Assembly (NCBI GenBank): GCA_002269645.1
Contig: NIVC01000562.1
Location: forward strand, 124,001-188,000
DNA length: 64,000 bases
Reading direction: 5' to 3'
Source: Macrostomum lignano
Taxonomy: Eukaryota
The position numbers and the translations under genes are program-made. Positions 1 to 34,492 of the stretch are shown in pieces; position 1 is the stretch's first letter, and each line of letters begins with the position of its first letter. The notes under the pieces are model-generated. The model had not been told where the DNA came from and did no database searches. It was given only the letters and a program-made list of their open reading frames with translations.

Positions 1-2
1 TG

Positions 3-623
3 TACAAACTGCTGCCGGCTAAGGACATGGACCGGCTGCGCCTGGCCTGGCCAGGGCCCCCAGCCCGTCTGCACGATCAGCCGCACCGGCTATTGGCCAT
101 CTGTCTGGCCCACGAGGGCCCGGGCAGCGTGCTGGACTGCCTGCGCCGGGCCGGCCTGGCCGCCGAGCTCTGGGCCGGAGTGCGCAACCGCGGCCTGTGC
201 GACAATCCAGCCGCTTCGCTGTTCGAAGTTGGCGTCCGGCTCACGCCGGCCGGACTGCGGGCCTGGGAGAGAATCGTTCGACTCATTTACGCCTACATCG
301 GCCTCATGGGCCAGCGGCTCAACGAGCTGGCGAGAATCTACGCCGAGCGTAGGCGCATCTGGCGGACGGCCTTCCGGTTCCAGGAGGAGGACGAGCCGGC
401 CGACAGCGTTGAGTTTGCCAGCTGCAACATGCACCGCCTGCAGCCGGAGATGTGGCTGATGGGCGATCGGATCGTGCGCCGATTTAACCCCGAAGCAATT
501 GAGGACTATCGGAAACGGCTGCGGCCTCGGAACTGCTGCATTCTGCTGACCTCGCGCTCGTATGGACCAATCTGCGATCAGGTCACCGATGGACCGGCGG
601 TGCGATTCGCTGAGCACAGGTGC

Positions 624-717
<94 letters not shown>

Positions 718-742
718 GTGTTTGTCTGTCTGTCTGTCTTAG

Positions 743-791
<49 letters not shown>

Positions 792-3700
792 GCCTTTCCT
801 TTATGCTTTCATAGTTACATGCAGTTACCTCCCAGTTTTTAGTTATAGCCAAAAAGCATTTCCATATAGATTTTTAAAAACCGTCAAATTAGTCAGAAAC
901 TCTAAATAAACGAAACAAAAAATCTTTGCAAAGCTTAGTAACACCAGTAAATAATGAATTCCAACATTTCAGTTTCAGCGCTACTGCCGTCTTATATTGG
1001 CAACGAAATTTTAGTTTTGTATTGATAAAAACATAGCATCCTATCGGTTTCAATGTATTATAGAGGCAAATAGGCCAGCCTTCAAATACAAATGCACAAA
1101 CCCCGATACCTCGTCCTTAAAGAAACGATACACTTTACTGAATAAAACAAGAAGAAAAATACTTAGCCTATTGTTGTACAATCTTAGCCGCTCTGCCCAC
1201 TGGGAATATTAGCTATTACCTATGGAAAACCTGCTATTTTTAGCAGGCTCCAATCGCAACGAAATGACTAATAGTGCTGTGCTGGCGCATACGTTTCCAT
1301 AGGAAATCGGGTACTATGTGAAAAAGAGTAAAAAAGCCTTGCTTACATTTGCGCTTCACTCCAATTTGCATTCCTATGAGCTATGGCTAGCGATCTATAT
1401 ATATATCTGTGCGAACTGGATTCAGTGTCAACAGTTTTAGAATTACGTTAAAAAGACACGACAGGAAGAGGCAAGGCTGCGGCATGCTATAGCCATAGCC
1501 AAGACTCTAAAGCTATATTATTTTGCAGTCTGTTGCAATGGGATGCGAAAAACTGGTTGAAGTGGTGAGGAAAAGTTGGAGAAGGTTGCTGACAGTTGGT
1601 AAAGAATCAGTGCACAGAGGTCTTAGAAATTCTATATACAGTACCAATAAATCCTTTATTGGGATATTGTGGTATCTATACTTTTAAGAAGGGCCTCTTG
1701 CGGATATTCTTTTATTCTATCTATACTTTGCAGTCTAGTCTAGATTAATAAATTGAATAGTTAAAACCGCAACACTTAGTAAACAATAGTAAACAACAAA
1801 CCTACCGACTTCAACAGCGTATTGTCAACAAGCTGAATAGTTTTAATTGAAGCATATTCTAGAATCCAAGAATTCCACGTTGCCTGTGTATTGGTATTAT
1901 ATTACCAACTAAGAGTTTTTTGTAATGTTGATTAACATCTGGACTTTCGGTTTGGCGTCAAGATTTTACATCTAAGATGTTGTGACCAATTGAAATTGTT
2001 AATCTAAGACGCTACAAGTTTGAATACTTATTTTTTAGGTAATAAAAATGGTTAGTTCAATAGTTAAACTAACTAGGGTAGGGATTCTAGCCTAGTTGTT
2101 AGAGCGTCGGACTCACGACTTGAAGGTCGGGGGTTCGATTCTCAGCCAACCCACTCGATGAACTGTAGTCACTCACTCAATGATGAACAGCAGTCACCCA
2201 CTCAGCTGTCAGTTTGGACATGCATAGACACCTATCAGGGTTGTAGCCTAGTGGTTAGAGCGTCGGTCTCACGACTGTAAGGTCTTGGGTTCGATTCTCA
2301 ACCCACTCGGAACAATCTGTGTCCTTGAGCAAGACACTTAACTCTGCATTGCTTCAGTTCACCCAGCTGTAAAATGGGTGCCAGCATTAGCTGGGGTAAC
2401 TGAGGGTGTGTGGCGACCTCCCAGTCCTTGGACTGAACAGCCGTACGCAGCCTTCAGATACGCCGCGCAATAGCGGCGACTGAACTGTCGGTTGCATATC
2501 TGGCCTAATTGGGGCAGGTGTATGCAGTTATTATTATTACTACTACTATTATTATGATTATTAATAGTTAGTAATTACTTATTAAGAAGTGTTCTAAACC
2601 CGACAAAAATCATTTTAATTGGTACCAAAACTGGAGCAGTAAAGCCTAAAGAGAAATTACCGTAAGATTAAAGGCGTAAAAATACGAAATGACAGTCTCC
2701 AACTGGCACATAAAACTTGCCTCCGGCAGGCTCAGCGAGGCCACAATGGCCGACTGGGAGCTCTGCGTGACGAATCCGGACACTGAGATGCTGAACGCCT
2801 GCCGGCTGCACCTGCCGCTGCCCAACCAGTTCGTGTCCGAGCAGTTTAACGTGCCGTCGCCGGGCGAGGCCTACAGAGAGATGGGACTGGAATGCGTGCC
2901 GGAGGTGGGCGCGGCTGGCGTTTTAATATTGCTCATATTAACATTTCATTTGTATTGCATCTCTGTGCTAAGTTTCCAATTTAGGTACTTGTAATGAAAA
3001 AGATAACTAGATTCTTAATAGGATTCTCCATGAAGATACCTATCTATGTCTATCGAGTTTTCAAATAATTTCACCTCGAATCCAGGTATATCCACCTCGA
3101 ATCCAGGTATATCCACTGAGAATCCAGGTATATCCATTAAAAATCCTGGTATCTCCACTTAGAATCCAGCTATCTCCACTTAGAATCCAGCTATCTCCAC
3201 TTAGAATCCAGCTATCTCCACTTAGAATCCAGCTATCTCCACTTAGAATCCAGCTATCTCCACTTAGAATCCAGCTATCTCCACTTAGAATCCAGCTATC
3301 TCCACTTAGAATCCAGCTATCTCCACTTAGAATCCAGCTATCTCCACTTAGAATCCAGCTATCTCCACTTAAAATCCAGCTATCTCCACTTAGAATCCAG
3401 CTATCTCCACTTAGAATCTAGCTATCTCCATTAAAAAATCCTGGTATCTCCACTTAGAATCCGGGTATCTCAATGAGAATCCAGCCTTTTATCCAGGCAT
3501 CGCCAATAAGATTTCAGGTATCTTTCAATTATGAGGTTAAGAGAATCAGACATGAACTCCGACATCCCATGAGCCTTGATACATTTATGAGTATTTGTCT
3601 ATACTCCTACTTCGCAAGTCGAAAGCTAACTATCTCATGTAGGCTCCGAACGAAACCTGTTGTCCCGCAGTACCCAGTTCGCCTTCTCGTTGGCGACCCA

Positions 3701-6700
3701 GCCGTGGACCGGTTCGGGCCCCTGTTCTATTATAAGGACCGCAAGTTCAAGACGCCAAGAGGTTCGCTTTTTTTTGCAATGCTTTCTGTGCGATGCTTTC
3801 CTATATACTATATAAAAATCAATTTATTAATTTGATTGACACTTTGGATTTCACTTCAGCCGTCGTTCGAGTCAGCTTAGACTCTCCTGTTATTTGTGAG
3901 TCGCTAGAAAAGTAAGTTGCATTTTTGCCTGGTAATCAAATTGACGGTATGATCTGAAAATGTGGGAGGGTAACAGAACAGCATGGTCTGAGAATGTAGG
4001 CGGGTGACAGCATGGTCTGAGAATGTGGGAGGGTGACGGCATGGTCTGAGAATGTGGGAGGGTGACAGCTTGGTCTGAGAATGTGGGAGGGTGACGGCTT
4101 CGTCTGGGAATGTGGGAGGGTGACAGCATGGTCTGAGAATTTGGGAGGGTGACGGCATGGTCTGGGAATGTGGGAGGGTGACAGCATGGTCTGAGAATGT
4201 GGGAGTGTGACGGCTTCGTCTGGGAATGTGGGAGGGTGACGGCATGGTCTGAGAATGTGGGAGGGTGACAGCATGGTCTGGGAATGTGGGAGGGTGACAG
4301 CATGGTCTGGGAATGCGGGAGGGTGACAGCATGGTCTGGGAATGTGGGAGGGTGACAGCATGGTCTGAGAATGTGGGAGGGTGACAGCATGGTCTGGGAA
4401 TGTGGGAGGGTGACGGCATGGTCTGAGAATGTGGGAGGGTGACGGCATGGTCTGGGAATGTGGGAGGGTGACGTCATGGTCTGAGAATGTGGGAGGGTGA
4501 CGGCATGGTCTGAGAATGTGGGAGGGTGACGGCATGGTCTGGGAATGTGGGAGGGTGACGTCATGGTCTGAGAATGTGGGAGGGTGACGGCATGGTCTGA
4601 GAATGTGGGAGGGTGACAGCATGGTCTGGGAATGTGGGAGGGTGACGGCATGGTCTGAGAATGTGGGAGGGTGACGGCATGGTCAGGGAATGTGGGAGGG
4701 TGACGGCATGGTCTGAGAATGTGGGAGGCTGACGGCATGGTCTGAGAATGTGGGAGGGTGACGGCATGGTCTGGGAATGTGGGAGGGTGACGGCATGGTC
4801 TGGGAATGTGGGAGGGTGACGGCATGGTCTGAGAATGTGGGAGGGTGACGGCATGGTCTGGGAATGTGGGAGGGTGACGGCATGGTCTGGGAATGTGGGA
4901 GGGTGACGGCATGGTCTGAGAATGTGGGAGGGTGACAGCATGGTTTGAGAATGTGGGAGGGTGACAGCATGGTCTGAGAATGTGGGAGGGTGACAGCATG
5001 GTTTGAGAATGTGGGAAGGTGACAGCATGGTCTGAGAATGTGGGAGGGGGACAGCATGGTCTGAGAATGTGGGCGGGTGACGGCATGATCTGAGAATGTG
5101 GGAGGGTGACAGCATGGTCTGAGAATGTAGGCGGCTGACGGCATGGTTTGAGAATGTGGAGCCGTGCCAGGTGGTGCGATCCAAGAATGAGCACCTGTAC
5201 ATTTCAGCTCAACACTGGTGCACCTGTGGCTGTACATGTTCGATTTTCAGTTGAGCAAGGAGTTGTACGCCGCCGTCGAGGCCTATCTGTGGTATGTGAC
5301 TGATTTTCAAGCTTTCTACGAGACTTGTTATGCAGCAGTCGGTTTTGCGTTTATCTACATAAAAAATACTCATCACAAAATTTATAGGTACGAAGTTCTA
5401 TACGTAGAGCCATTTTCTATTCGTATTCGAGTTGAAGGCTACAATGACAAGCTGTTTGTAAGTGATTCGTGTTGAGGGCTACAATGACAAGCTGTTTGTA
5501 AGTGATTCGTGTTGAAGGCTACAATGACAAGCTGTTTGTAAGTGATTCGTGTTGAAGGCTACAATGACAAGCTGTTTGTAAGTGATTCGTGTTGAAGGCT
5601 ACAATGACAAGCTGTTTGTAAGTGATTCGTGTTGAAGGCTACAATAACAAGCTGTTTGTAAGTGATTCGTGTTGAAGGCTACAATGACAAGCTGTTTGTA
5701 AGTGATTCGTGTTGAAGGCTACAATAACAAGCTGTTTGTAAGTGATTCGTGTTGAAGGCTACAATAACAAGCTGTTTGTAAGTGATTCGTGTTGAAGGCT
5801 ACAATAACAAGCTGTTTGTAAGTGATTCGTGTTGAAGGCTACAATGACAAGCTGTTTGTAAGTGATTCGTGTTGAAGGCTACAATAACAAGCTGTTTGTA
5901 AGTGATTCGTGTTGAAGGCTACAATGACAAGCTGTTTGTAAGTGATCGTGTTGAAGGCTACAATAACAAGCTGTTTGTAAGTGATTCGTGTTGAAGGCTA
6001 CAATGACAAGCTGTTTGTAAGTGATTCGTGTTGAGGGCTACAATGACAAGCTGTTTGTAAGTGATTCGTGTTGAGGGCTACAATGACAAGCTGTTTGTAA
6101 GTGATCCGTGTTGAAGGCTACAATAACAAGCTGTTTGTAAGTGATTCGTGTTGAAGGCTACAATGACAAGCTGTTTGTAAGTGATTCGTGTTGAGGGCTA
6201 CAATGACAAGCTGTTTGTAAGTGATTCGTGTTGAAGGCTACAATGACAAGCTGTTTGTAAGTGATTCGTGTTGAAGGCTACAATAACAAGCTGTTTGTAA
6301 GTGATTCGTGTTGAAGGCTACAATGACAAGCTGTTTGTAAGTGATCCGTGTTGAAGGCTACAATAACAAGCTGTTTGTAAGTGATTCGTGTTGAAGGCTA
6401 CAATGACAAGCTGTTTGTAAGTGATTCGTGTTGAGGCTACAATGACAAGCTGTTTGTAAGTGATTCGTGTTGAGGGCTACAATGACAAGCTGTTTGTAAG
6501 TGATTCGTGTTGAAGGCTACAATAACAAGCTGTTTGTAAGTGATTCGTGTTGAAGGCTACAATGACAAGCTGTTTGTAAGTGATTCGTGTTGAGGCTACA
6601 ATGACAAGCTGTTTGTAAGTGATTCGTGTTGAAGGCTACAATGACAAGCTGTTTGTAAGTGATTCGTGTTGAAGGCTACAATAACAAGCTGTTTGTAAGT

Positions 6701-9700
6701 GATTCGTGTTGAAGGCTACAATAACAAGCTGTTTGTAAGTGATTCGTGTTGAAGGCTACAATGACAAGCTGTTTGTAAGTGATCCGTGTTGAAGGCTACA
6801 ATAACAAGCTGTTTGTAAGTGATTCGTGTTGAAGGCTACAATGACAAGCTGTTTGTAAGTGATTCGTGTTGAGGGCTACAATGACAAGCTGTTTGTAAGT
6901 GATTCGTGTTGAGGGCTACAATGACAAGCTGTTTGTAAGTGATTCGTGTTGAAGGCTACAATAACAAGCTGTTTGTAAGTGATTCGTGTTGAAGGCTACA
7001 ATGACAAGCTGTTTGTAAGTGATTCGTGTTGAGGGCTACAATGACAAGCTGTTTGTAAGTGATTCGTGTTGAAGGCTACAATGACAAGCTGTTTGTAAGT
7101 GATTCGTGTTGAAGGCTACAATGACAAGCTGTTTGTAAGTGATTCGTGTTGAAGGCTACAATGACAAGCTGTTTGTAAGTGATCCGTGTAGAAGGCTACA
7201 ATGACAAGCTGTTTGTAAGTGATTCGTGTTGAAGGCTACAATAACAAGCTGTTTGTAAGTGATTCGTGTTGAAGGCTACAATAACAAGCTGTTTGTAAGT
7301 GATTCGTGTTGAAGGCTACAATGACAAGCTGTTTGTAAGTGATCCGTGTTGAAGGCTACAATAACAAGCTGTTTGTAAGTGATTCGTGTTGAAGGCTACA
7401 ATAACAAGCTGTTTGTAAGTGATTCGTGTTGAGGGCTACAATGACAAGCTTTTTGTAAGTGATTCGTGTTGAAGGCTACAATAACAAGCTGTTTGTAAGT
7501 GATTCGTGTTGAAGGCTACAATGACAAGCTGTTTGTAAGTGATTCGTGTTGAGGCTACAATGACAAGCTGTTTGTAAGTGATTCGTGTTGAAGGCTACAA
7601 TGACAAGCTGTTTGTAAGTGATTCGTGTTGAAGGCTACAATGACAAGCTGTTTGTAAGTGATTCGTGTTGAAGGCTACAATGACAAGCTGTTTGTAAGTG
7701 ATCGTGTTGAAGGCTACAATGACAAGCTGTTTGTAAGTGATTCGTGTTGAAGGCTACAATGACAAGCTGTTTGTAAGTGATTCGTGTTGAAGGCTACAAT
7801 GACAAGCTGTTTGTAAGTGATCGTGTTGAAGGCTACAATGACAAGCTGTTTGTAAGTGATCCGTGTTGAAGGCTACAATGACAAGCTGTTTGTAAGTGAT
7901 TCGTGTTGAAGGCTACAATGACAAGCTGTTTGTAAGTGATTCGTGTTGAAGGCTACAATGACAAGCTGTTTGTAAGTGATTCGTGTTGAAGGCTACAATG
8001 ACAAGCTGTTTGTAAGTGATCGTGTTGAAGGCTACAATGACAAGCTGTTTGTAAGTGATTCGTGTTGAAGGCTACAATGACAAGCTGTTTGTAAGTGATT
8101 CGTGTTGAAGGCTACAATGACAAGCTGTTTGTAAGTGATTCGTGTTGAAGGCTACAATAACAAGCTGTTTGTAAGTGATTCGTGTTGAAGGCTACAATGA
8201 CAAGCTGTTTGTAAGTGATTCGTGTTGAAGGCTACAATGACAAGCTGTTTGTAAGTGATTCGTGTTGAAGGCTACAATACAAGCTGTTTGTAAGTGATTC
8301 GTGTTGAAGGCTACAATGACAAGCTGTTTGTAAGTGATTCGTGTTGAAGGCTACAATAACAAGCTGTTTGTAAGTGATTCGTGTTGAAGGCTACAATGAC
8401 AAGCTGTTTGTAAGTGATTCGTGTTGAAGGCTACAATGACAAGCTGTTTGTAAGTGATTCGTGTTGAAGGCTACAATGACAAGCTGTTTGTAAGTGATTC
8501 GTGTTGAAGGCTACAATGACAAGCTGTTTGTAAGTGATTCGTGTTGAAGGCTACAATGACAAGCTGTTTGTAAGTGATTCGTGTTGAAGGCTACAATGAC
8601 AAGCTGTTTGTAAGTGATTCGTGTTGAAGGCTACAATGACAAGCTGTTTGTAAGTGATTCGTGTTGAAGGCTACAATGACAAGCTGTTTGTAAGTGATTC
8701 GTGTTGAAGGCTACAATGACAAGCTGTTTGTAAGTGATTCGTGTTGAAGGCTACAATGACAAGCTGTTTGTAAGTGATTCGTGTTGAAGGCTACAATGAC
8801 AAGCTGTTTGTAAGTGATTCGTGTTGAAGGCTACAATGACAAGCTGTTTGTAAGTGATTCGTGTTGAAGGCTACAATGACAAGCTGTTTGTAAGTGATTC
8901 GTGTTGAAGGCTACAATGACAAGCTGTTTGTAAGTGATTCGTGTTGAAGGCTACAATACAAGCTGTTTGTAAGTGATTCGTGTTGAAGGCTACAATGACA
9001 AGCTGTTTGTAAGTGATTCGTGTTGAAGGCTACAATAACAAGCTGTTTGTAAGTGATTCGTGTTGAAGGCTACAATAACAAGCTGTTTGTAAGTGATTCG
9101 TGTTGAAGGCTACAATGACAAGCTGTTTGTAAGTGATTCGTGTTGAAGGCTACAATGACAAGCTGTTTGTAAGTGATTCGTGTTGAAGGCTACAATGACA
9201 AGCTGTTTGTAAGTGATTCGTGTTGAAGGCTACAATAACAAGCTGTTTGTAAGTGATTCGTGTTGAAGGCTACAATGACAAGCTGTTTGTAAGTGATTCG
9301 TGTTGAAGGCTACAATGACAAGCTGTTTGTAAGTGATTCGTGTTGAAGGCTACAATAACAAGCTGTTTGTAAGTGATTCGTGTTGAAGGCTACAATAACA
9401 AGCTGTTTGTAAGTGATTCGTGTTGAAGGCTACAATAACAAGCTGTTTGTAAGTGATTCGTGTTGAAGGCTACAATGACAAGCTGTTTGTAAGTGATTCG
9501 TGTTGAAGGCTACAATGACAAGCTGTTTGTAAGTGATTCGTGTTGAAGGCTACAATGACAAGCTGTTTGTAAGTGATTCGTGTTGAAGGCTACAATAACA
9601 AGCTGTTTGTAAGTGATTCGTGTTGAAGGCTACAATGACAAGCTGTTTGTAAGTGATTCGTGTTGAAGGCTACAATGACAAGCTGTTTGTAAGTGATTCG

Positions 9701-12700
9701 TGTTGAAGGCTACAATAACAAGCTGTTTGTAAGTGATTCGTGTTGAAGGCTACAATAACAAGCTGTTTGTAAGTGATTCGTGTTGAAGGCTACAATGACA
9801 AGCTGTTTGTAAGTGATTCGTGTTGAAGGCTACAATAACAAGCTGTTTGTAAGTGATTCGTGTTGAAGGCTACAATAACAAGCTGTTTGTAAGTGATTCG
9901 TGTTGAAGGCTACAATGACAAGCTGTTTGTAAGTGATTCGTGTTGAAGGCTACAATAACAAGCTGTTTGTAAGTGATTCGTGTTGAAGGCTACAATGACA
10001 AGCTGTTTGTAAGTGATTCGTGTTGAAGGCTACAATGACAAGCTGTTTGTAAGTGATTCGTGTTGAAGGCTACAATAACAAGCTGTTTGTAAGTGATTCG
10101 TGTTGAAGGCTACAATAACAAGCTGTTTGTAAGTGATTCGTGTTGAAGGCTACAATGACAAGCTGTTTGTAAGTGATTCGTGTTGAAGGCTACAATGACA
10201 AGCTGTTTGTAAGTGATTCGTGTTGAAGGCTACAATGACAAGCTGTTTGTAAGTGATTCGTGTTGAAGGCTACAATGACAAGCTGTTTGTAAGTGATTCG
10301 TGTTGAAGGCTACAATACAAGCTGTTTGTAAGTGATTCGTGTTGAAGGCTACAATGACAAGCTGTTTGTAAGTGATTCGTGTTGAAGGCTACAATGACAA
10401 GCTGTTTGTAAGTGATTCGTGTTGAAGGCTACAATGACAAGCTGTTTGTAAGTGATTCGTGTTGAAGGCTACAATAACAAGCTGTTTGTAAGTGATTCGT
10501 GTTGAAGGCTACAATGAGAAGCTGTAATTGGAATGCACTGGTTGGAATGCACTGGTTGGAATGAAACTGTATTGCAGCATGTATTTCTGAAGCAGCATGA
10601 ATAGAAGGCCTGCAGCTGTTTACCTTTCCAATTCCACTAAATTAAAGAGCTGTTTAAATGTATTCTCCACTGTTTAACTGTGGGGCCTCATGCATATGCA
10701 ATTCCCGTGCCATGTGCTACCTTATGCCTGCTATTAAGACTTTTTCGTTGCTTTCACTGTTTGTTGCTAGCCAAGCGAGCATACAAACTATTTTGTCATA
10801 GTTACTAGTATAAGGAACGCAAGCCAAAATCAGTTAGACTTAGAAATATCATTAGTAAGTTTTCGTTTGTCATTGTTATTACTGCTATATTTTTATTTAG
10901 TTACTAAATGTACTATATATAGTCCTTTTGTGAGGCCGCTACTGTCAACTCCGGTTCTTCGCCGACTCATTTCAGAATCTCTATGCGACCATCGGGCGAA
11001 AGCTGAAGCAATTTGGCGAGATGCTCAGCTTGATGGATCAGCGGCTTAACTTTGGATTAGCCAAAGAGGAGGTGCGAAAGATGATGGTGAATTCGCTGCT
11101 TACTCCAGCCCGGCTTATAGCGTAAGTTTTATGAAACCCAATATACTCGGTGCTGTAGTGAATTGGCGGTGTAGTGAATTGGCGGTGTAGTGAATTTACG
11201 GTGTAGTGAATTGGTGATGTAGTGAATTGGTGATGTAGTGAATTGGTGATGTAGTGAATTGGTGATGTAGTGAATTGGTGATGTAGTGAATTGGCGATGT
11301 AGTGAATTGGTGATGTAGTGAATTGGTGATGTAGTGAATTGGCGATGTAGTGAATTGGTGATGTAGTGAATTGGTGATGTAGTGAATTGGCGATGTAGTG
11401 AATTGGTGATGTAGTGAATTGGTGATGTAGTGAATTGGCGATGTAGTGAATTGGTGATGTAGTGAATTGGTGATGTAGTGAATTGGTGATGTAGTAAATT
11501 GGTGATGTAGTGAATTGGTGATGTAGTGAATTGGCGATGTAGTGAATTGGTGATGTAGTGAATTGGTGATGTAGTGAATTGGCGATGTAGTGAATTGGTG
11601 ATGTAGTGAATTGGTGATGTAGTGAATTGGTGATGTAGTGAATTGGTGATGTAGTGAATTGGTGATGTAGTGAATTGGTGATGTAGTGAATTGGCGGTGT
11701 AATGAATTGGTGATGTAGTGAATTGGCGGTGTAGTGAATTAGCGATGTATTGAATTGGCGATGTAGTGAATTGGTGATGTAGTGAATTGGCGATGTAGTG
11801 AATTGGTGATGTAGTGAATTGGTGATGTAGTGAATTGGTGATGTAGTGAATTGGCGGTGTAGTGAATTGGTGATGTAGTGAATTGGCGGTGTAGTGAATT
11901 GGCGATGTAGTGAATTGGTGATGTAGTGAATTGGCGGTGTAGTGAATTGGTGATGTAGTGAATTGGCGGTGTAGTGAATTGGTGATGTAGTGAATTGGTG
12001 ATGTAGTGAATTGGTGATGTAGTGAATTTTTGATGTAGTGAATTGGCGGTGTAGTGAATTGGTGATGTAGTGAATTGGCGGTGTAGTGAATTGGTGATGT
12101 AGTGAATTGGCGGTGTAGTGAATTGGCGGTGTAGTGAATTGGTGATGTAGTGAATTGGTGATGTAGTGAATTGGCGATGTAGTGAATTGGCGATGTAGTG
12201 AATTGGTGATGTAGTGAATTGGCGATGTAGTGAATTGGTGATGTAGTGAATTGGCGGTGTAGTGAATTGGCGATGTAGTGAATTGGTGATGTAGTGAATT
12301 GGTGATGTAGTGAATTGGTGATGTAGTGAATTGGTGATGTAGTGAATTGGCGGTGTAGTGAATTGGTGATGTAGTGAATTGGCGGTGTAGTGAATTAGCG
12401 ATGTAGTGAATTGGCGATGTAGTGAATTGGTGATGTAGTGAATTGGTGATGTAGTGAATTGGCGATGTAGTGAATTGGTGATGTAGTAAATTGGCGGTGT
12501 AGTGAATTGGTGATTTAGTGAATTGGCGGTGTAGTGAATTGGCGATGTAGTGAATTGGTGATGTAGTGAATTGGTGATGTAGTGAATTGGCGGTGTAGTG
12601 AATTGGTGATTTAGTGAATTGGCGGTGTAGTGAATTGGTGATGTAGTGAATTGGTGATGTAGTGAATTTGTGATGTAGTGAATTGGCGGTGTAGTGAATT

Positions 12701-15700
12701 GGTGATGTAGTGAATTGGTGATGTAGTGAATTGGCGGTGTAGTGAATTGGTGATGTAGTGAATTGGTGATGTAGTGAATTGGCGGTGTAGTGAATTGGCG
12801 ATGTAGTGAATTGGCGGTGTAGTGAATTGGTGATGTAGTGAATTTTTGATGTAGTGAATTGGCGGTGTAGTGAATTGGTGATGTAGTGAATTGGCGGTGT
12901 AGTGAATTGGCGATGTAGTGAATTGGCGATGTAGTGAATTGGCGGTGTAGTGAATTTGCGGTGTAGTGAATTGGCGATGTAGGGAATTGGCGGTGTGGAG
13001 AAGTGGCACCGGTGAGAAAGGGCACCGGTGAGAAATGGCACCAGAGAGAGATGGCACCGGAGAGAAATGGCAACGGAGAGGATTGGCACCGGAGAGAAAG
13101 GGCACCAGAGAGAATTGGCACCGGAGAGAAATGGCACCAGGGAGAAATGGCACCGGTGAGAAAGGGCACCGGTGAGAAAGGGGACCAGAGAGAAAGGGGA
13201 CCAGAGAGAAATGGCACCAGAGAGAAAGGGCACCAGAGAGAAATGGCACCGGTGAGAAAGGGCACCAGAGAGAAATGGCACCAGAGAGAAAGGGCACCAG
13301 AGAGAAATGGCACCGGTGAGAAAGGGCACCAGAGAGAAATGGCACCAGAGAGAAAGGGCACCAGAGAGAAATGGCACCGGTGAGAAAGGGCGTCGGACTG
13401 ATAGGACGCCAGGGGTAAAGTTCTCTTCAAGGAAAGGGCAGCAAGACCTTGCAGAATTTCAGCAATCAGCAAGCTTAAATAAAGCGACTTGCGATTTGAT
13501 TCCAATAGCTTATGGCTAATTGTATGTTGTTGGGCGGGGCTGCTGGCCCAGCTTGATTGCTGTGTCAGTGGAATTAGACCAACCGTTGCCAATAAACTCA
13601 ACTGAAGTAGAAGAGCTAAGAAATTGTGCATTTGTGAGTGTATCGTTCTGCTGTTTTTTGCCTCTGTTGGACCCAGTTCTGCTTAATAGTTAATCAAAAA
13701 TACCTATTTTTGGCTCAGGATGTATATATTTAATGGCTTCGGCAATAAGTAGCATAAAAATGTTGTTCACTTGAGTCGCATCTAACTACTGCAAGTAGCC
13801 TAAACTGAGCGTGTGTGTTTTTCTTGTACTTTTCCATTTCCCAGCGAGATGCGGCTGTACCTGTTGGAACGGGATCGCTACCTGCGCAACGATCAGCTGG
13901 CCTGCCTGGAGTCGCTAACCCTGGCCCAAGTTGGCCAGTTTCACAAGCGGCTGCTATCAAAGCTATCTATTAAAGTCTACGTGCATGGCAACCATGGACC
14001 CGAGGTGGGTTAATGAATAAATGCTTGTGATAGATTTGTCAAGCCATGTGTTTTTTGGTACATACTGGCAAATACAGGTGTTTTTGTCCTATCCACATCA
14101 GGCGTATTTACTAACCACATCAGGTATATTCAGTCAGCCATAACGGGTATATTTAATCAGCTAAAACGGCAATATTAATTATTAATTAGCCACATCAGGT
14201 ATATTAATCGGCCACATCAGGTATATTAATCAGCCACATCAGGTATATTAATCAGCCACATCAGGTATATTAATCAGCCACATCAGGTATATTAATCAGC
14301 CACATCAGGTATATTAATTAGCCAAATCAGGTATATTAATCAGCCACATCAGGTATATTAATCAGCCACATCAGGTATATTAATCAGCCACAATGGTATA
14401 TTAATCAGCCACATCAGGTATATTAATCAGCCACAATGGTATATTAATCAGCCACATCAGGTATATTAATCAGCCACAATGCCATGGTATATTAATCAGC
14501 CACATCAGGTATATTAATCAGCCACAATGGTATATTAATCAGCCACAATGGTATATTAATCAGCCACAATGGTATATTAATCAGCCACAATGGTATATTA
14601 ATCAGCCACATCAGGTATATTAATCAGCCACAATGGTATATTAATCAGCCACATCAGGTATATTAATCAGCCACAATGGTATACTAATCAGCCACAATGG
14701 TATATTAATCAGCCACATCAGGTATATTAATCAGCCACAATGGTATATTAATCAGCCACAATGGTATATTAATCAGCCACAATGGTATATTAATCAGCCA
14801 CATCAGGTATATTCAACCAGCCACATCAGGTATATTAATCAGCCACAATGGTATATTAATCAGCCACATCAGGTATATTAATCAGCCACAATGGTATATT
14901 AATCAGCCACAATGGTATATTAATCAGCCACAATGGTATATTAATCAGCCACATCAGGTATATTAATCAGCCACAATGGTATATTAATCAGCCACAATGG
15001 TATATTAATCAGCCACAATGGTATATTAATCAGCCACAATGGTATATTAATCAGCCACAATGGTATATTAATCAGCCACATCAGGTATATTAATCAGCCA
15101 CAATGGTATATTAATCAGCCACAATGGTATATTAATCAGCCACAATGGTATATTAATCAGCCACATCAGGTATATTCAACCAGCCACATCAATTATACTG
15201 AATTGGCCACAAGTAAATTTAATTAGCACAGCACGTATGCATAATTAGTTAGCCACAACAGGTATATATAATGAGCACACCATTTTTATTGAATTAGCCA
15301 CTCCATAGCTCAATATGCACTGGATTATTTGTTTGATTTTCCCACTCTGTGTGTTATGATCGGCTTAGAAGAGCTTTCCTTATAATTATTTCCCTGCTGA
15401 CAGGACGCAAAGAACTACTTTCGTTATATTGTGTCCGTCCTGGATCCCGGCTGCGAAGTTGCCAACTGCCAGGTGAGAGAGTACAGTTACTACTTGGTAA
15501 TTTATTTTTGAAGAAAAGTGTCAATATTGATTTTCTATCAGCTGTCATCAGTTAGGCATTTAAAAACAATAACAAAATACACCTCGCTCCGGTCACGAGT
15601 GGCCACAGAGGGGGGGAGGTATCAGAGCGCACGCCTTTGTGGCCGCACTCCTGAAAAAGTAGCATATTTAAAAAAGAAATCAAAAGAACATACCGCATAC

Positions 15701-18700
15701 CTACATGAAAATATTATGCTAATTATGCTATGTCATAAGTTTTGCAGTACTGTCGCTAATCAAATTGAGTAGCAAATTTCATGCAGAGATTTTAATACAC
15801 TTTTCGTCTATTCTACTGCAAGTAGGATTTCAGAGTGTGACTTAAAAATTATTCTCTCAGCCAAACAAATCTACAAAGCTCTGTGTGATGCGGTACAGTA
15901 CATATATACATAATATTAGAATACATATGCGATCTTCATATAGAGGCATGGCGTGCAAAATTTGCTTAAAGTATTCGTAACAAGATTATTAAATGAGGGC
16001 TCAAAAGTCAGCAGAATGGGCAGAATTGCCGTCAGCGCTGGTGTGTGGGATGATGTCGCCGAAGGCGTTGCGTCAGGGTGCCCGCAGCCCTTTCAGGTAA
16101 AAAATGTCTTAGCAATTTCTAATCAATAGTCAGCCCTAACGTAACTCTGTTTCTGGCTGCATGGGTACTGGGATGATTTGACCATAGACAATCGACTCGG
16201 ACAATCAAACTGAGATCGGCACCATAGATCTCGGCCTCGGCTTGATTGTCTATAGTCTATGGCCAAGCCACCCAGACAACAGATACTTAGCCCTGAATTG
16301 CATACGAAGCATACAATTTGCTTGAATAACAAATCTCATTTTGAGTGTCAGTACGCTCGTAAAAGTTTCAATGATCAACGAATGCCATCTTCAAAGTAGC
16401 CGATGCGCTAGGCCAGCGTTCCGCGCTCCCTGTACCAGCTGACCAGCACAGCCGCGGCCACAATGCAGCTGGGCAGGCAGACCAGTAGGCTAACAGCAGC
16501 TGAGCCAACTAGCATAGCAACGCATTGCCTGTGCGAGCCGACCTGGGCTAGGAAACTGGCCAATACGAATGCCAGGCCGGTGGCCAGCACCAGGCTGTGC
16601 GCTGCGCACGCGCCCAGCTGTAGACGGGCATTGAGAAACAGTCGGCCGCTTAGGCAGCTCAGGGCCACGCTTAGTCCGGCGGTCAGGGCGCTGCTTGCGC
16701 ACGTAGCGAAACCCAGGCCTGCGTGTGGGAGGGATGGAATGGGGAAATTTAGGCCTATCTCTGGTTGTAGGCTGCTTGTGGGCACCCTAGCGCAATGCCT
16801 TCGGCGACACTGTCCCACAACCAGCGCTGAGGTAATTCTGCCCATCCCACTTACAATGACTCTTGAGCACATAAAAGCCCCCCCCCATAGTGGTTAGGGG
16901 TTGTAGCCTAGTGGTTAGAGCGTCGGACTCACGACTTGAAGGTCGGTGGTTCGATTCCCGATCCCACTGGAACAATTTGTGCCCTTGAGCAAGACACTTA
17001 GCTCTCCATTGCATCAGTTCATTCAGCTGTAAAATAATTTCCAGCATTAGCTGGGGTAATTGAGGGTGTGTGGCGACCCCCCAGTCCTTGGACTGAACAG
17101 CCGTACGCAGCCTTCAGATGCGCCGCGCAATAGCTGCGGCTGAGCTGTGGTTGCACATCTGGCCCAATCGAGGAAGAAGGTGTAATCAAAAAAGGCGCGC
17201 CAATACTGTACGCCGACACGCACTCATACACACGCTCACAGGCTGTACAGAGGCCCTGATTTTCTAAACGTCAGGCATGTACGCTCTCTGTGCCTTTGGG
17301 GGGTTGGCCTTCATGGTTGTAAATAGGACGACAACCCCAAAACTTCGTGCACAGAAGCCCCAAATGAATGTTTGCGCACGGAATCGAACCAGGGGTCCTA
17401 GCGCGTGAGTCGATCGCGTTTTTACCGCTGAGCTGCCTTCTAGATACTATGGATTAATATTTGATGGATGGGATCTGGGATCGAAAAAAATTGAAGAATT
17501 GAAGAAATTAGGATTCGGATTAGATATCATATTCTGAACTATACATAGGCATATGAAATTGAGATATTTAGATGCTGGTGACGGTATCTGATATACGAGC
17601 GTATGCTTTGTATTATTGTCATATTGTTATAGAAATTCGGTTTAAAAATAAATCATAATTAATTTCTGCAACTGCTTTTCTTCCGGTCACTGTCGGTGCA
17701 ACATGTGGATTATCTAAATCCTACGGAGGGTGGCAAGTCAGGACGGTGCCGTCTCACCTGAGCATTCTAACATTCTCCTTTAAGATTGACATTAACGGTT
17801 GTTATTCGCGCAGCTAAACTCCTGGGATTCGAGCCCGGGTCCTCTAATACCGCTCTGGCGCTCTAACAAATTAGCCCTTCGACGCCAATTTGAAATTGCA
17901 TTTCCGTGTTTAAGTTGGCTTTGTGGTAGGGGGTAAATTTTTCCTTACATTTTGGTGACTTGCTTCTGTCTGTCGCTTCAACAGGCGGCAGTCGGCATGG
18001 AAAAGGGAGGGGCGGGTGGAGGCAGCAACCCGAAGGTTTGACACTTTTTGTGAACTCTTTTATAAACTTTTATAAACATCTTGGTTGTTAGGCCCGTCTG
18101 CACTTTAAGTCCAGTCCGTCAGTTGTTAGGAGGGAACACGACTTTTTCTTAAAATGTAGCTTGGAATATTTTCCTACTGCAAAAGCATAGAGAAGCACCG
18201 CGGCTGCAGCACAGGGGCATAATGGGATTCTTAGGCAGTGCGGAAAGTTGCGGGGGGCGAAAACTATTGAGAGCGAGTGGCTTCGCATAATGGAATTTGA
18301 GGAAACTATAATATAGAAAAATAATACTGGCCTCGTGCGGCTTCTAAAGTTATTAGGACCTATTTTTAATTCTACTCCGCATAATTATTCAGTCTATTAG
18401 TTATAATAAAAGTCTGAAAGTATGAATAAAGCTTTGTCCCCCCCCTCCCGGGGTGTGTTAACTCAGGCCCGCGATGGACAGTTAATGGGATTTTTCTCAA
18501 ACCCTTCCGATCCAACGCTTGAATGCTTACAGTCGCAGCGTTGCCGAATTCTAATTCGCTTACGCTACGCTCGATTGCGCGCTATGCAATTCCTCTTTCC
18601 TAGACTCCCGCGCCAGCCCCTGGCAAGGCCACGCAGCCTCATTTTGGCACTATCAGACCTGGCCGTGATTTCCAACTCAACTCCGGCTCAGCTTCTGTAC

Positions 18701-24700: not shown

Positions 24701-27515
24701 GCTTTCTTAGAAAATATTTGAAGACTGACTTTACCAGACAAATGGACTTTTTATAAGGCAGGAGGGTTGTGTGCACCCTGGCCATACATGCGCAACAGTC
24801 GGCCGAGTCGGCCGATTCGGCCGACCGATTTGGCGGCCAACCAAGGAAGTCGCAAAAATACCCACCCAAAAATTTACCTAAGTAGTAGTACTAAGTAGCT
24901 GACGAGGCATTTTGGCTTAATAAGACAGTTATAGTTACTCCTGCCGTTTACCCAAAGTTGCGTTTATTTTGCTTTAGAGTTTTTTGATGTGTAAGTCGCA
25001 TTTTTGGCCAAAAACTACGTCGCATTTTTGTTAAAACTAAGTCGCATGGCCGACCGAATTTTGGAGGTTGCGCATGTATGACCCTGGCGCACTTTAAGCG
25101 ACATTGTCACACAAGCGCGCGGATACGTACGCAGTCATACGCACAGGCACACACTCACACAGGAGTGTACAGCGGCCCTAACTTTATTTATCGTTAGTCA
25201 TGTACACTTCACTGCGCCTTGGGGGTTGGCTCTTAAGGCCGTTAATTGCACGAGCAGAGCCAAGCCGAGATTCCAATTTAGCCCCAAATTAATGTGACTG
25301 CACTTGGAATCGAGCCTGGGTCGCTGGCACATGAGAGGGCCGGTACGGCCACCCCTAAACAGAAAAATACACTACACGGAGATATAAACTTTTTCATTGT
25401 TTTTTCGGCACAAAAATAGCAATAGTTTTTATATAGGAAGCATTTTCGAATGCTCACTTTCTGATTAGACATACCTGTGTAGTTTTTTGCTACTGTAAGT
25501 AGTCAAACAAACAAGTTCCAACCTGCCGACTGGTTTCAGCACATGATGTCCGAGCCGTGCTACGACTATCTGCGCACCAAGCACCAGCTAGGCTACCAAG
25601 TGTACTGCGACAGTCGGCAGACTAACGGCGCCATCGGGTTCATGGTGCAGGTGAACAGCCAGGCGGACCAGTTCAGCATGGCCCAGCTGCAGGCCAGGGT
25701 GGACAAGTTCACTGGCGGTCGCTTTCTCAAGCTATTGACCGGCATGTCGGACGAGGCGTTCTCGAATTACGCCAGGTCTCTTGTCGACCTGCTGCTGGTT
25801 GAGGATGTCGGCATGACTCAGCAGGCTGATCGGTACTGGTGCGCGATACTGGACAATGGCCCGGCCTGTCCGCCTGCCGCTTTTGGACTGCACTACACCG
25901 AGGCTGAGATGCTGCTGCACTCGGTTACTAAGGCTGAGGCCATCGAGTTCTATCAGCGGGCTCTGCGCTCCACTGGCAGGCGGTCATTCACCTTTCAGGT
26001 GAGTTGGGTCATGGTTTAGATCTTTGTAGCTTTTGGTGGAGTGGAGTAGATTTTGGTACATATTATGCTAGAGTAGAGTGCGTCTGGGTGTTTTGGTAGA
26101 GTATAGTAAAATCGGCGATAGATTATGGTAGAGAGGCTTCATCGTCTTTTATATAGTAGAGTAGATTTTGTAGATTATAGCTCGTAATAGAGTAGAGTGG
26201 GTCTTGGTAGGTTTGGTAGAGTAGATTGGATGTTGGTAGGTTTTGGCAGAATGAGTCTGTGTAGATTTTGATACATTAGAGTGAGTCTTGTTTGGTAGAG
26301 TAGAGTGAGTCTGGGTAGATTTTGGTAGAGTAGAGTGAGTTTTGGTAGATTTTGCTAGAGTAGTGAGTATTGGTAGATTTTGTTAGAGTAAATTGACTCT
26401 TAGTAGAGTAGAGTGAGTCTTGGTAGAGTAGAGTGAGTCTTGGTAGAGTAGAGTGAGTCTTGGTGGAATTTGGTAGAGTAGAGTGCGTCTTGGTAGGTTT
26501 GGTAGACTGAATCTGGATATATTTTGGTAGAGTAGATTGAATGTTGATAGGTTTTGGTAGAGTAGATTGAATGTTGATAGGTTTTGGTAGAGTAGATTGA
26601 ATGTTGATAGGTTTTGGTAGAGTAGAGTGTATCTGAGTAGGCTTTAGTAGGGTAGAGTGGAAATGGGTAGATTTTTTTGTAAAGTAAGAGTAGAATGGGT
26701 GTCTGAGTAGATTCGGCAGAGTAGAGAATAGGTTCGAGTTCAGTAGAGCGGGTCAGCTCAAGTTTAAAGGTGTCTAGACTGGCTTTCAATGCTAATAATT
26801 CAATGGCACGAAGTTTGCAGAAACAATTCGTCACTGGAAGGTGCGATGCAAGCAGTCGGTGCTGTTAATAGCTTAGCACCTTTGATCTTTAATTGTCCAG
26901 CTGCGGTTTCTACCTAATACTTTGTATCTAATATACTGGGTGACATCTGCTATAAGCTCGTGCCCATAAACCTGACTCATTTTTATTAGAATATATACTT
27001 ATTACCGACCTGCTGCCAGGTGGCAGCTCACTTTATAAACGGGTCTGACTCTCGTGCCACGACCCCTGGTTAGATTCCGTGTGCAGGCACATTCATTCAC
27101 TTGGGGCTTGTGTGAACGATTAGACAGTCAGGGCCGCTATTCACTCCACGTGAGCGTGTGCATGACTGCGTGCCTGCGTACAGTATTGGCGCGCTTGTGT
27201 GTGCTCAGGAGTCAGTGGAATGGGCAGAATGGCCTCAGCGCCGGTTGTGAGCCGATATCGCCGAAGGCGTTGCACTGGCAGCCCTCCTGCAATAATCACT
27301 ATTCATCCCCCACACTGTTCAAGGCGGAAGGCGCGACCAAGAAAGTGTCCGGCCGGGCTGGCAAGAAGCCATTCGCCATGCCGCTGTGCTACTCAACAGA
27401 CACTGTCGACAGCCAAGCCAAGGACGGCGACGAAGAAGAGTGCATCGTCTGGACTGGAGACCTGCACCAGTTCAAAGCCAGCCTGCAGTACAATGCAGCT
27501 AGGGCGATTGTTTAA
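3..27515 (+). CDS. NRDC: Nardilysin (M16A metallopeptidase), 5'-partial; C-terminal two thirds in 12 exons
   Basis: Exons built by hand with GT-AG and consistent phases: <3-619, 2730-2904, 3671-3761, 3860-3911, 5208-5291, 5388-5457, 10976-11121, 13845-14004, 15404-15472, 23526-23672, 25540-25998, ~27324-27515 (last acceptor AAG, less certain). Motifs HEGPGSVL, FRFQEEDEPADSVE, LHLPLPNQFV, YPVRLL..YKDRKFKTPRA, IRVEGYNDKL, VHGN, EPCYDYLRTKHQLGYQVY and EDVGMTQQADRYW follow the order in nardilysin. PCYDYLRT..LGYQVY and VNSQADQF fit nardilysin better than IDE. The HXXEH site would lie upstream of the window. Confidence 0.88.
624..787 (+). repeat. (TCTG)n microsatellite directly after the nardilysin donor at 620
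   Basis: Near-perfect TCTG run of about 40 units. Confidence 0.97.
2081..2158 (+). mobile_element. SINE family A, tRNA-derived head only
   Basis: TAGCCTAGTTGTTAGAGCGTCGGACTCACGACTTGAAGGTCGGGGGTTCGATTC has A and B boxes and matches the heads at 2238, 16897, 49264 and 57432. Confidence 0.75.
2238..2575 (+). mobile_element. SINE family A (tRNA head, Deu/Nin-like core, ATT-rich tail)
   Basis: A/B boxes, then CCTTGAGCAAGACACTTAACTC..CACCCAGCTGTAAAATGGGT, ending in (TTA/CTA)n; four near-full copies in the window. Confidence 0.85.
3072..3482 (+). repeat. 21-bp minisatellite ATCTCCACTTAGAATCCAGCT
   Basis: About 19 tandem units in the intron 2905-3670. Confidence 0.95.
3945..5162 (+). repeat. 29-bp G-rich minisatellite TGTGGGAGGGTGACGGCATGGTCTGAGAA
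   Basis: About 42 units filling almost the whole intron 3912-5207; source of the minus-strand pseudo-ORFs. Confidence 0.96.
5425..10525 (+). repeat. 40-bp minisatellite made of the last 33 nt of a nardilysin exon plus its 5' splice site
   Basis: Unit ATTCGTGTTGAAGGCTACAATGACAAGCTGTTT|GTAAGTG. The first copy (5425-5464) is the real exon end IRVEGYNDKLF and donor; ~125-128 copies estimated from length. Confidence 0.97.
11150..13390 (+). repeat. Compound 16-bp minisatellite: (GTGATGTAGTGAATTG)n to ~12995, then (GGCACCAGAGAGAAAT-like)n
   Basis: Two unit families share one period and join in phase; the array starts ~28 bp after the donor at 11122. Confidence 0.95.
14095..15190 (+). repeat. 21/22-bp minisatellite GTATATTAATCAGCCACA(ATG/TCAG)
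   Basis: About 50 interspersed units of two length variants. Confidence 0.95.
16408..22083 (-). CDS. Nested antisense two-exon gene; ~166-aa four-transmembrane protein (MS4A/CD20-like topology)
   Basis: Exon 1 is 22083-21894 (ATG CCG TTT...ACG G|GTGAGT, phase 1). Exon 2 is 16718-16408 (CCCCATTCCATCCCTCCCACACGCAG|GC CTG GGT, phase 1, ends TAG). The joined frame is open: MPFVPP...KLIGSAIGVLMHGAMAATADAVFAANSCTSVTGLGFATCASSALTAGLSVALSCLSGRLFLNARLQLGACAAHSLVLATGLAFVLASFLAQVGSHRQCVAMLVGSAAVSLLVCLPSCIVAAAVLVSWYRERGTLA. It has four hydrophobic segments and exon-like GC content. Alternative ATGs lie at 22056 and 22044. Confidence 0.7.
16897..17170 (+). mobile_element. SINE family A copy
   Basis: Same head and core as 2238-2575. 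Confidence 0.85.
17195..17440 (-). mobile_element. SINE family B copy (diverged)
   Basis: Reverse complement has a GGTTCGATTCC B box and the body shared with 49945-50301 and 50325-50620. Confidence 0.7.
17700..17885 (-). mobile_element. Probable third tRNA-derived SINE head
   Basis: Minus strand reads GGCGTCGAAGGGCTAATTTGTTAGAGCGCC..GGGCTCGAATCCCAGG (A/B-box-like); single copy in the window. Confidence 0.4.
18808..19975 (+). repeat. 30-bp minisatellite GGGTCACTGATACTGTCCAGATCATTCACT
   Basis: About 39 units; the 3n period creates pseudo-ORFs on both strands. Confidence 0.96.
21160..21720 (+). repeat. 20-bp minisatellite ATTTGGCTATGAAGGAAGAC, block 1
   Basis: About 28 units; same unit as 22636-23390. 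Confidence 0.95.
22636..23390 (+). repeat. 20-bp minisatellite ATTTGGCTATGAAGGAAGAC, block 2
   Basis: About 37 units with internal higher-order repetition. Confidence 0.95.
23780..24060 (+). repeat. ~50-bp (2x25) degenerate minisatellite AGAGTACCCCCAGAGATACCTAACT/AGAGTACCTTCAACTGTACCTCACT
   Basis: About 5 dimeric units downstream of the donor at 23673. Confidence 0.85.
24748..25353 (-). mobile_element. SINE family B copy interrupted by a hAT MITE
   Basis: Head at ~25353 on the minus strand and tail at ~24748; the body is split at ACCCTGGC, which is uninterrupted in the 43173-43551 copy. Confidence 0.8.
24783..25080. mobile_element. hAT-type MITE, 298 bp
   Basis: 14-bp TIR CATACATGCGCAAC/GTTGCGCATGTATG; 8-bp TSD ACCCTGGC at 24775-24782 and 25081-25088. 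Confidence 0.92.
26020..26760 (+). repeat. Degenerate ~23-29-bp repeat TTTTGGTAGAGTAGA(GTGAGTCT)
   Basis: Decaying tandem array starting just after the donor at 25999. Confidence 0.8.
27085..27285 (+). mobile_element. SINE family B, 3' part
   Basis: CAGGGCCGCT..GTGCTCAGGAGTCAGTGGAATGGGCAGAATGGCC.. is shared with the other B copies. Confidence 0.7.
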
Positions 27516-28611
27516 GCTTCTGGCTAGCGATATTAATACTGGATGGACTACTGTTTTTGTTTTGGCTAAGTTTCTCTTTTAATTGATAATTTAATTGACT
27601 CCTGTTCTGTAGCCCTTGAAATTGTAGGCAGAGGTTGCTTTATAAAGAGAGCCAACCTCTGGCCCTGGTGCGTACTCCCAACTATTATTAATCAGAGCAC
27701 GAACAGGAGTCTATTAAAATGGACTTTTATAATCTGTAGTATAGGCAACGTTAACCAGTCAAAAGACCATGCAATTATGACAATACGAGTATACTGCTGT
27801 ACTTTAACAAGGTTTTTAAAGGATTTAAAAATTTTTAAGCTACCGTGGTCTCTTGACTGGTTTATTACTCGTATACTCCATAAACAGCCTTTAGATTGCC
27901 TTTATTAGGCATTAGAGTACTTTTATTTAAGCCAAGCGTGTGTTTGTTTTAAATTAAACTTTATTGCTTTTTTCAAACCCTTTCTAAGTAATTTACTAAT
28001 TATTTTGGTTGTATACTACTTAATGCGCGCTCAGTCCTACTGCTATCCATTTCTGCGACTTTAACCGACTTTAAGCATCAGGCTTTACTAGTATACACAA
28101 AGCCCAAAGCCTAAAACTGAACTCCATGCGCTACACTGACTGAAGCACAAACTAAGCAGATAAATCAATTTTTAGGAGTTTTACTTTTTTGCTCATTTTT
28201 TTCTGCCGAAAACTTGTTTAAAGATATTTCAATTGCTTATTTATTTCTTTTTTATCTAGTAGGCATTAGAAAATTGTTTCAGTAGCCGAAATCTATTGTC
28301 TTCTTTCACTTGCTCTATTCTCTCCCTCTTCTCTACCTCTATCTCTCTCCCTCTCTTATCTACCTTTACCTCTCCCCATCTTCACTCTGACTCTCTCCCT
28401 CTCCATCTCCACCACAGCTTCTCCCTCTTCACCTCTTCTTATCCTCCTTCCCCTTCTGCCCTCTTTCTCTACCTCCCACTCACCTCTCACCCTCTTCTTC
28501 CTTTCACTTTGCATCTGTGAACTGTAAGCGCATGTTTATACTGATTTGTGAGAACATTTGAAACATACTAACTATTCTACACCTCTGCCTCTTCCGCGTG
28601 CCCATTTTCAG

Positions 28612-28680
28612 GCGACAGCAGTGGGATACCGCAAGTCGGCTACCGCTGAAGAGTTGCCTCGCAACGGGCAGCAGCAGCGG

Positions 28681-28712
<32 letters not shown>

Positions 28713-31700: not shown

Positions 31701-31841
31701 GGTGGACGCCCTGGCCTTGTCCGGGACGGCCGTTCCAGTGGCCGAGGTTGTCACCAGGCTGACCGAAGTCCTGCTGGCCAGGAATTCTAGGAAACCCACC
31801 ACCTCCGGCGAGCTGCGGGCCTTTGGTTAGTTACCTGCTAC

Positions 31842-31898
<57 letters not shown>

Positions 31899-31949
31899 GT
31901 CTGTCTGCCCGTCTGTCTGTCTGTATGTCTATCTGTCTGTCTGTCTGCC

Positions 31950-32017
<68 letters not shown>

Positions 32018-34265: not shown

Positions 34266-34492
34266 GCTCCAAAAATCAGCCCACAGGTTGCCTAACTAAA
34301 AATTCTCCTTGTTCAGTAAGTATAAGAATCGTCATTAAGCTATTCCAAGAGACTCCTTAAACTACTGTAAAAGTAGCCCTTAGGCCTTAAGCTATTCCAA
34401 GAAACGCCCCTTAAACAACTCAAAAATCGCTCTATACCTTTTTTATGAACTGCAATTAATAAGCTTTCCTAAATATTGCCTTTCAACTTAGC

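Follow-up and report, generated by a model that had tools for sequence, protein, structure and literature searches.

A copy-specific, probably hyper-expanded minisatellite reiterating the 5' splice site of a nardilysin-like peptidase gene in the flatworm Macrostomum lignano

Introduction

How is a 5' splice site chosen when the end of an exon and its donor are repeated more than a hundred times in succession, and is such a repeat a regulatory device or an accident of genome growth? The question is raised by a nardilysin-like M16 peptidase gene of the flatworm Macrostomum lignano, found on the forward strand of a 64,000-nucleotide stretch of contig NIVC01000562.1 (C562:124001-188000), which is called the window here and to whose first letter the coordinates refer unless another contig is named. 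A 40-nt minisatellite with 127 donor sites begins inside an exon of this gene and fills most of the following intron. We consider it very probable that this array is a copy-specific, hyper-expanded intronic variable number tandem repeat (VNTR) whose first monomer lies across the exon-intron boundary. It most likely arose as a by-product of a genome prone to repeats, with neutral or slightly harmful effect, and did not evolve as a regulatory device.

A class of minisatellites in which the exon-intron boundary falls within the first monomer has been described from the human genes F7, IFI6, CBS, LMNB2 and PDGFA (PMC1557585). PacBio, Illumina and 454 reads went into the M. lignano assembly Mlig_3_7, for which Canu and SSPACE were used; simple and tandem repeats make up 15% of it, redundant blocks at least 95% identical amount to 180 Mb, and the sequenced line, DV1, carries extra large chromosomes (Wudarski et al. 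2017, PMC5730564).

Results and discussion

Tandem Repeats Finder reported a single array at 5425-10525 (+) with a period of 40, 127.8 copies, 97% matches and a score of 9747. Cutting the sequence after each GTAAGTG gave 127 complete units of the 40-nt type and a terminal partial unit of 31 nt. The array is thus real at the place where the original prediction had put it, while the donor number of about 125 given there is corrected to 127. Tandem Repeats Finder and the unit census agree with the prediction also in that the unit consists of the last 33 nt of a 70-nt exon plus GTAAGTG, reiterated from the exon end. GTAAGTG closes all 127 units and is preceded by CTGTTT in 126 of them and by CTTTTT in the remaining one, so that the TTT|GTAAGT context ascribed to the later copies is indeed present. 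Regular-expression positions place the GTAAGTG starts at 5458, 5498 and so on to 10488, with a spacing of 40 nt in 116 cases and 39 nt in ten. The consensus unit, ATTCGTGTTGAAGGCTACAATGACAAGCTGTTTGTAAGTG, accounts for 70 of the 127 units; a GAC>AAC variant occurs in 31 units and GAAGG>GAGGG in 8, and single-base deletions shorten 10 units to 39 nt. Only unit 1 starts with ATTCGA, all others starting with ATTCGT or, in 10 units, with ATCCGT or ATCGT. Multi-unit blocks of variants recur along the array, which points to unequal exchange of unit blocks. Neither strand of the array contains an open frame longer than 52 codons, no RNA family of Rfam matched within it, and a motif search of the array found no AATAAA or ATTAAA.

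The first unit is the end of a coding exon. The 70-nt exon at 5388-5457 (+), which reads (W)YEVLYVEPFSIRIRVEGYNDKLF, lies between the acceptor tttatag|GTACGA and the donor CTGTTT|gtaagtga. It is preceded by an exon at 5208-5291 (+), ending in ...STLVHLWLYMFDFQLSKELYAAVEAYLW and supported by its splice contexts and by a joined translation that matches the gene models P0001 and P0002 and the paralogue P0003. The next exon, NLYATIGRKLKQFGEMLSLMDQRLNFGLAKEEVRKMMVNSLLTPARLIA, lies at 10976-11121 (+) behind the acceptor tttcag|AATCTC in phase 0; its splice contexts, the continuity of the frame and the alignment with P0003 support it. When eight exons of the window are spliced together at canonical sites, the result is an open frame of 465 amino acids (aa), which agrees with the M. 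lignano gene models as far as DKLF. The M. lignano paralogue P0003, annotated as nardilysin and 41% identical, reads ...EGFNDKLF|VLYSTILSKLEQFG and matches the joined frame at DKLF|VLYSTIL. The precomputed Pfam families of the matching proteins are M16 peptidase domains. A human IDE sequence had served to locate the exons at first, and it was replaced by the models of the species itself and the paralogue.

Since positions 5457 and 10976 join in frame and P0003 agrees at DKLF, the donor after DKLF (GTAAGT, 5458-5463, +), donor 1 of the 127, is by the evidence of sequence comparison the productive, conserved junction, as had been proposed for the first copy. It lies 70 nt from the upstream acceptor. 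Reading through it gives ...DKLF VSDSC followed by an in-frame TGA at 5473-5475 (+), six codons on, and P0001 and P0002 end in the same peptide. Because this TGA precedes all the other donors in frame, any later donor keeps the premature stop, which also bears out the earlier claim. The other 126 donor copies (5498-10494, +, the last at 10488-10494) are therefore intronic pseudo-donors, each behind an in-frame stop. The U1 small nuclear RNA (snRNA) of this genome begins with ATACTTACCTG and forms six contiguous pairs with GTAAGT, the exon-side TTT remaining unpaired. The sequence preceding the donors is CTGTTT and not AG, which sets them apart from recursive splice sites.

Further copies of the locus were sought among 5269 contigs (764,410,778 bp). 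Three contigs contain the exon and a further one contains the array; the exon is identical in C998 and C1942. C998 carries the upstream exons and runs out after 74 units, a minimum for this copy; in the flank it shares 99.4% identity with the window. C218 (508,910 bp) has a 3,176-N gap (77231-80406) followed by 117 units and then by collinear downstream sequence, 99.8% identical to the window beside the array; the protein encoded 3' of the array on this contig is GenBank PAA87725.1 from M. lignano. The order of unit variants is repeated in both contigs: the 74 units of C998 align to the first part of the window array, and the 117 units of C218 can be paired one by one with window units 11-128, apart from a few unit indels. 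Small indels of this kind separate the arrays of C562, C998 and C218. As these variant orders align, the long array was assembled twice independently at a similar length. C998 breaks inside the array (1-3000 of that contig), and the sequence of C218 beyond the N gap is unrelated to the window. Hidden array copies inside the N-run of C218 were considered in view of 161 reverse-strand matches against 98 visible in that contig, and were rejected, C998, which is also on the reverse strand, supplying the remainder.

The third exon-bearing contig, C1942, is a sister copy collinear with the window throughout, with 86-99% identity per aligned block and about 94% identity in the introns beside the array. 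In a 590-nt alignment, the part of the intron behind the array (10526-10975) together with the next exon is 99.8% identical to C218 and 93.9% identical to C1942. The sister copy has only unit 1 and the same 31-nt terminal stub (1.8 units), hence one donor. Its coding sequence differs from that of the window by 2 synonymous differences in 1395 nt of the eight exons, the exon at 10976-11121 being identical and that at 13845-14004 having one difference, and the protein is identical over 465 aa. Coding constraint acts on both copies. The sister copy may be an allele or a recent duplicate, its sequence being compatible with either.

The donor array does not stand alone in its instability. Tandem repeats occupy 36.7% of the window and 50.6% of its first 26 kb (1-26000). 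In the M16 gene, arrays start 5-80 nt past the donors and occupy most of nearly every intron, with one or two minisatellites each; the 29-mer array at 3942-5159, for instance, sits in an intron of 1296 nt, and the introns without their arrays would be about 80-500 nt long. Eleven of the 12 arrays compared differ in copy number between the window and C1942. The GTCT array has 42 copies in the window and 75 in C1942, the 29-mer 41.8 and 25.8, the 16-mer 115 and 36, the 21/22-mer 47 and 91, the 30-mer 39 and 51 + 20, the two 20-mer arrays 28 and 38 as against 37 and 33, and the 50-mer 5.8 and 3.9, whereas the 21-mer has 19.4 in both. The 14-nt mini-array found by Tandem Repeats Finder directly behind the donor array (TTGGAATGCACTGG, 10528-10563, +) lies in the otherwise unique 3' part of the intron (10526-10975, +), which ends in the acceptor tttcag, and has 2.6 copies in the window and 29.6 in the sister copy. 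The C1942 listing has nothing that corresponds to a 32-nt array of 12.3 copies at 12998-13391 of the window. Copy-number instability is general here, and nowhere is it as extreme as in the donor array, with 127.8 copies against 1.8.

As both copies share the 31-nt terminal stub, the short direct duplication of the last 33 exon bases plus GTAAGTG would have predated the split of the two gene copies. In one lineage, slippage or unequal exchange may then have taken the copy number to about 128, the process being the same that would have inflated almost every other intron. Derivation of the 1.8-copy state from a clean 40-nt tandem duplication was considered and rejected, as the periodic stretch is 71 nt and not 80 nt long and the 9-nt flanks, compared by hand, match at only 1 of 9 positions; the founding event was thus not a simple duplication, or its edges have eroded.

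Both in its architecture and in its variability the array resembles the human boundary-spanning minisatellites. Head-to-tail units of 10-100 bp, an authentic donor in the first monomer, reiteration of that donor and a variable copy number are all found in it, and by its structure it is a new, extreme case of this known class. In intron 7 of F7, a polymorphic repeat of 37 bp in 5-9 copies, splicing proceeds solely from the donor furthest upstream (Borensztajn et al. 2006, PMC1557585). The pseudo-sites work once the first donor is mutated, for which the authors proposed 5'-to-3' scanning that weakens with distance (PMC1557585). F7 shares with the flatworm locus the first monomer that spans the boundary, the authentic donor followed by identical pseudo-donors and the varying copy number. 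It differs in having 5-9 units with 4 exon bases each and a weak donor, UGG/gugggu, instead of 127 units with 33 exon bases each and a perfect GTAAGT. Moreover, that no other donor than the first is used is an experimental result in F7 and a prediction for the flatworm array. The exon-intron junction is likewise reiterated in intron 2 of IFI6 (6-16), with 25 pseudo-sites, and in intron 13 of CBS, with 15-20 repeats of a 31-bp VNTR, where the authentic donor and the first two (IFI6) or the two nearest (CBS) pseudo-sites are used (PMC1557585). These arrays are far shorter, and in the flatworm the use of a pseudo-site adds a stop; since each pseudo-site brings in this stop codon, no isoform protein would arise from them. 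In LMNB2 (10-15 x 100 bp) and PDGFA (16-18 x 81 bp), also with junction-reiterating repeats, the authentic donor alone is used (PMC1557585), the units being longer and about ten times fewer than those of the flatworm array. Compared with the ordinary intronic minisatellites of M. lignano (Wudarski et al. 2017, PMC5730564), such as the neighbouring arrays with units of 14-50 nt, the donor array shares genome, gene, size range and instability, but starts 33 nt inside an exon and carries a functional-looking donor. Its 126 pseudo-donors are about five times as many as in the largest case summarised in PMC1557585 (25, IFI6), and the cases summarised there are all human.

By analogy with the human cases, donor 1 is probably chosen via exon definition or 5'-to-3' scanning. 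The pseudo-donors would then mostly remain unused, and RNA with the stop would arise when donor 2 or 3 is occasionally chosen. The locus can aptly be called a natural test of how a 5' splice site is chosen, as had been suggested, although the idea is not new: the minisatellite in intron 7 of F7 already served Borensztajn et al. (2006, PMC1557585) in this way. The flatworm locus is suited to probing the limits of the rule that the first donor wins, by scanning or by exon definition. The array-free sister copy in the same animal is a built-in control, and M. lignano can be made transgenic.

Several points weigh against the interpretation of the array as a hyper-expanded by-product whose first donor is the one mainly used. 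The choice of donor in a flatworm is taken over from mammalian cases and may follow other rules. The direction of change may also be the reverse: since the stub of C1942 carries the variants found in window unit 2, the two states could equally have arisen by expansion to 128 units or by contraction to 1.8. The copy number is exact only as far as an early PacBio/Canu assembly can be trusted, in which the ten 39-nt units appear to be indel errors that escaped correction. Finally, the gene models from two annotation sources all break at the array or a short way into it: P0001 and P0002 finish with ...DKLFVSDSC, P0011 and P0012 with ...GYNDKL, and 3' of the array there are only partial models of 212-218 aa covering the last two exons. 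Searches with a padded query of 866 aa, a query of 321 aa and a junction query of 140 aa found no protein or transcript model that joins 5457 to 10976.

The broken models could reflect a real disturbance of RNA processing by the array, which leads to the strongest competing explanation, namely that this gene copy is hypomorphic or broken. The 126 decoys or the 5-kb repeat itself would divert or stall processing and yield mostly stop-containing or unspliced RNA, which would be tolerated because DV1 carries other copies, including an array-free one. This proposal overlaps with the by-product explanation and differs from it solely in the size of the effect. Besides the models that end at the array, with the downstream exons annotated separately as partial proteins, the redundancy of the assembly, the extra large chromosomes of DV1 and the array-free copy encoding an identical protein are consistent with it. 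Nevertheless, the exons 3' of the array are intact and neither exon difference alters an amino acid, so that no decay is seen yet. Alternatively, the array may only confuse the assembly of transcripts from short reads. The annotation pipeline dropped transcripts overlapping repeats (PMC5730564), and the same protein searches did not find a full-length model for the array-free copy either, which favours a technical cause of the broken models. The human precedents also speak against a strong effect, as F7, LMNB2 and PDGFA use the authentic donor alone and IFI6 and CBS add just the two nearest pseudo-sites. A broken or hypomorphic copy is for these reasons unlikely, though it deserves more weight than any other alternative to the by-product explanation.

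In the public databases the M16 gene is split (window 5388-5475 and 25500-27515; P0001, P0002, P0006 and P0013) into the upstream read-through ...VSDSC* and a downstream 'partial' model of 212 aa (BOX15_Mlig026267g3 / BOX15_Mlig016776g1), and P0002 and P0011 bear unrelated N-terminal extensions. The split and extended models are probably mis-annotations. The array accounts for the split of the gene into two truncated database models, which allows the annotation to be fixed.

A more specific proposal, that distal donors are used often enough for the output of this copy to fall with the number of units via nonsense-mediated decay, appears improbable. If it were true, the locus would be an expression allele dependent on VNTR length and would serve as a natural assay in which 127 5' splice sites compete, in an animal amenable to transgenesis.

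That the array evolved as a device is less probable still, and we regard it as very unlikely. The original prediction had offered three such roles: a rheostat in which donor competition and nonsense-mediated decay are tuned by copy number, a sponge for the U1 small nuclear ribonucleoprotein (snRNP), and a telescripting device in which U1 protects a long intron from premature polyadenylation. The 127 identical sites, each with six contiguous pairs to a canonical U1 5' end, are what makes these roles attractive. An effect of copy number is conceivable, as the CBS 31-bp VNTR is associated with reduced enzyme activity according to the title of Lievers et al. (2001), cited in PMC1557585. All three roles have against them the sister copy, which lacks the long array and the donor cluster and encodes an identical protein over 465 aa. 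The rheostat is left without support by this single-donor copy and by the neighbouring arrays, whose copy numbers vary in a similar way. The sponge fares no better, as the genome has at least 27 U1 snRNA genes, nearly all identical and clustered at a spacing of about 11-22 kb (C1211-C1214, C3672, C3830, C4525 and C4853), so that titration by 127 sites in one pre-mRNA would be unlikely. As for telescripting, the array is without AATAAA and ATTAAA, and therefore holds nothing obvious for U1 to suppress.

Nor are tandem donor motifs peculiar to this locus. Three tandem AGGTRAGT motifs 12-42 nt apart gave 14,253 matches genome-wide and permuted control motifs of the same composition 6,538, 7,295 and 12,302, all these counts being dominated by a few big arrays. 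The count for the donor motif is the highest, yet not clearly outside the spread of the controls, and an enrichment of donor-motif arrays was rejected as a sign of anything special. Many of the arrays are dispersed satellite families with units, such as AGGTAAGTCGCAAAAAGGATT and AGGTGAGTAATAAAATCTCCA, that recur across contigs. Arrays of donor-like motifs are commonplace in this genome, and what sets the 40-mer array apart is its start within an exon. No new regulatory mechanism is indicated.

The creation or gross inflation of the long array by mis-assembly of noisy long reads, which the original prediction had named as a possible refutation and which might be suspected from the 64% of error-free bases assigned to Mlig_3_7 by REAPR (PMC5730564), from the end of C998 within the array, from the N gap abutting it in C218 and from the ten 39-nt units, is hardly credible, because unique sequence flanks the array on both sides within one contig and the units of C218 and C998 align with those of the window between flanks 99.4-99.8% identical.

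Other features of the window

Microsatellites of the (GTCT)n/(CTGT)n type nearly abut the donors of two genes, at 624-792 (CACAG|GTGCGTCTGTCT) and 31841-32140 (TTTG|GTTAGTTACCTGCTACTGTCTGT). The 38-nt array at 62894-63388, with 13.0 copies that are 100% identical, is far more homogeneous than the other arrays of the window; it either expanded very recently or owes this uniformity to the assembly or the consensus. The sole Rfam match in the window, tRNA-like and located at 16897-16966, lies inside a repeated element whose translations recur at about 2077-2533, 27040-27300 and 33280-33420; the element probably belongs to a tRNA-derived family of short interspersed elements. The next gene on the + strand (28552-34300) is rhophilin-like by eye, with HR1-type, BRO1-type and PDZ-type exons. 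It contains a (GCA)18 polyglutamine tract at 28668-28721, and its introns carry 29-nt, 28-nt and CTGT arrays.

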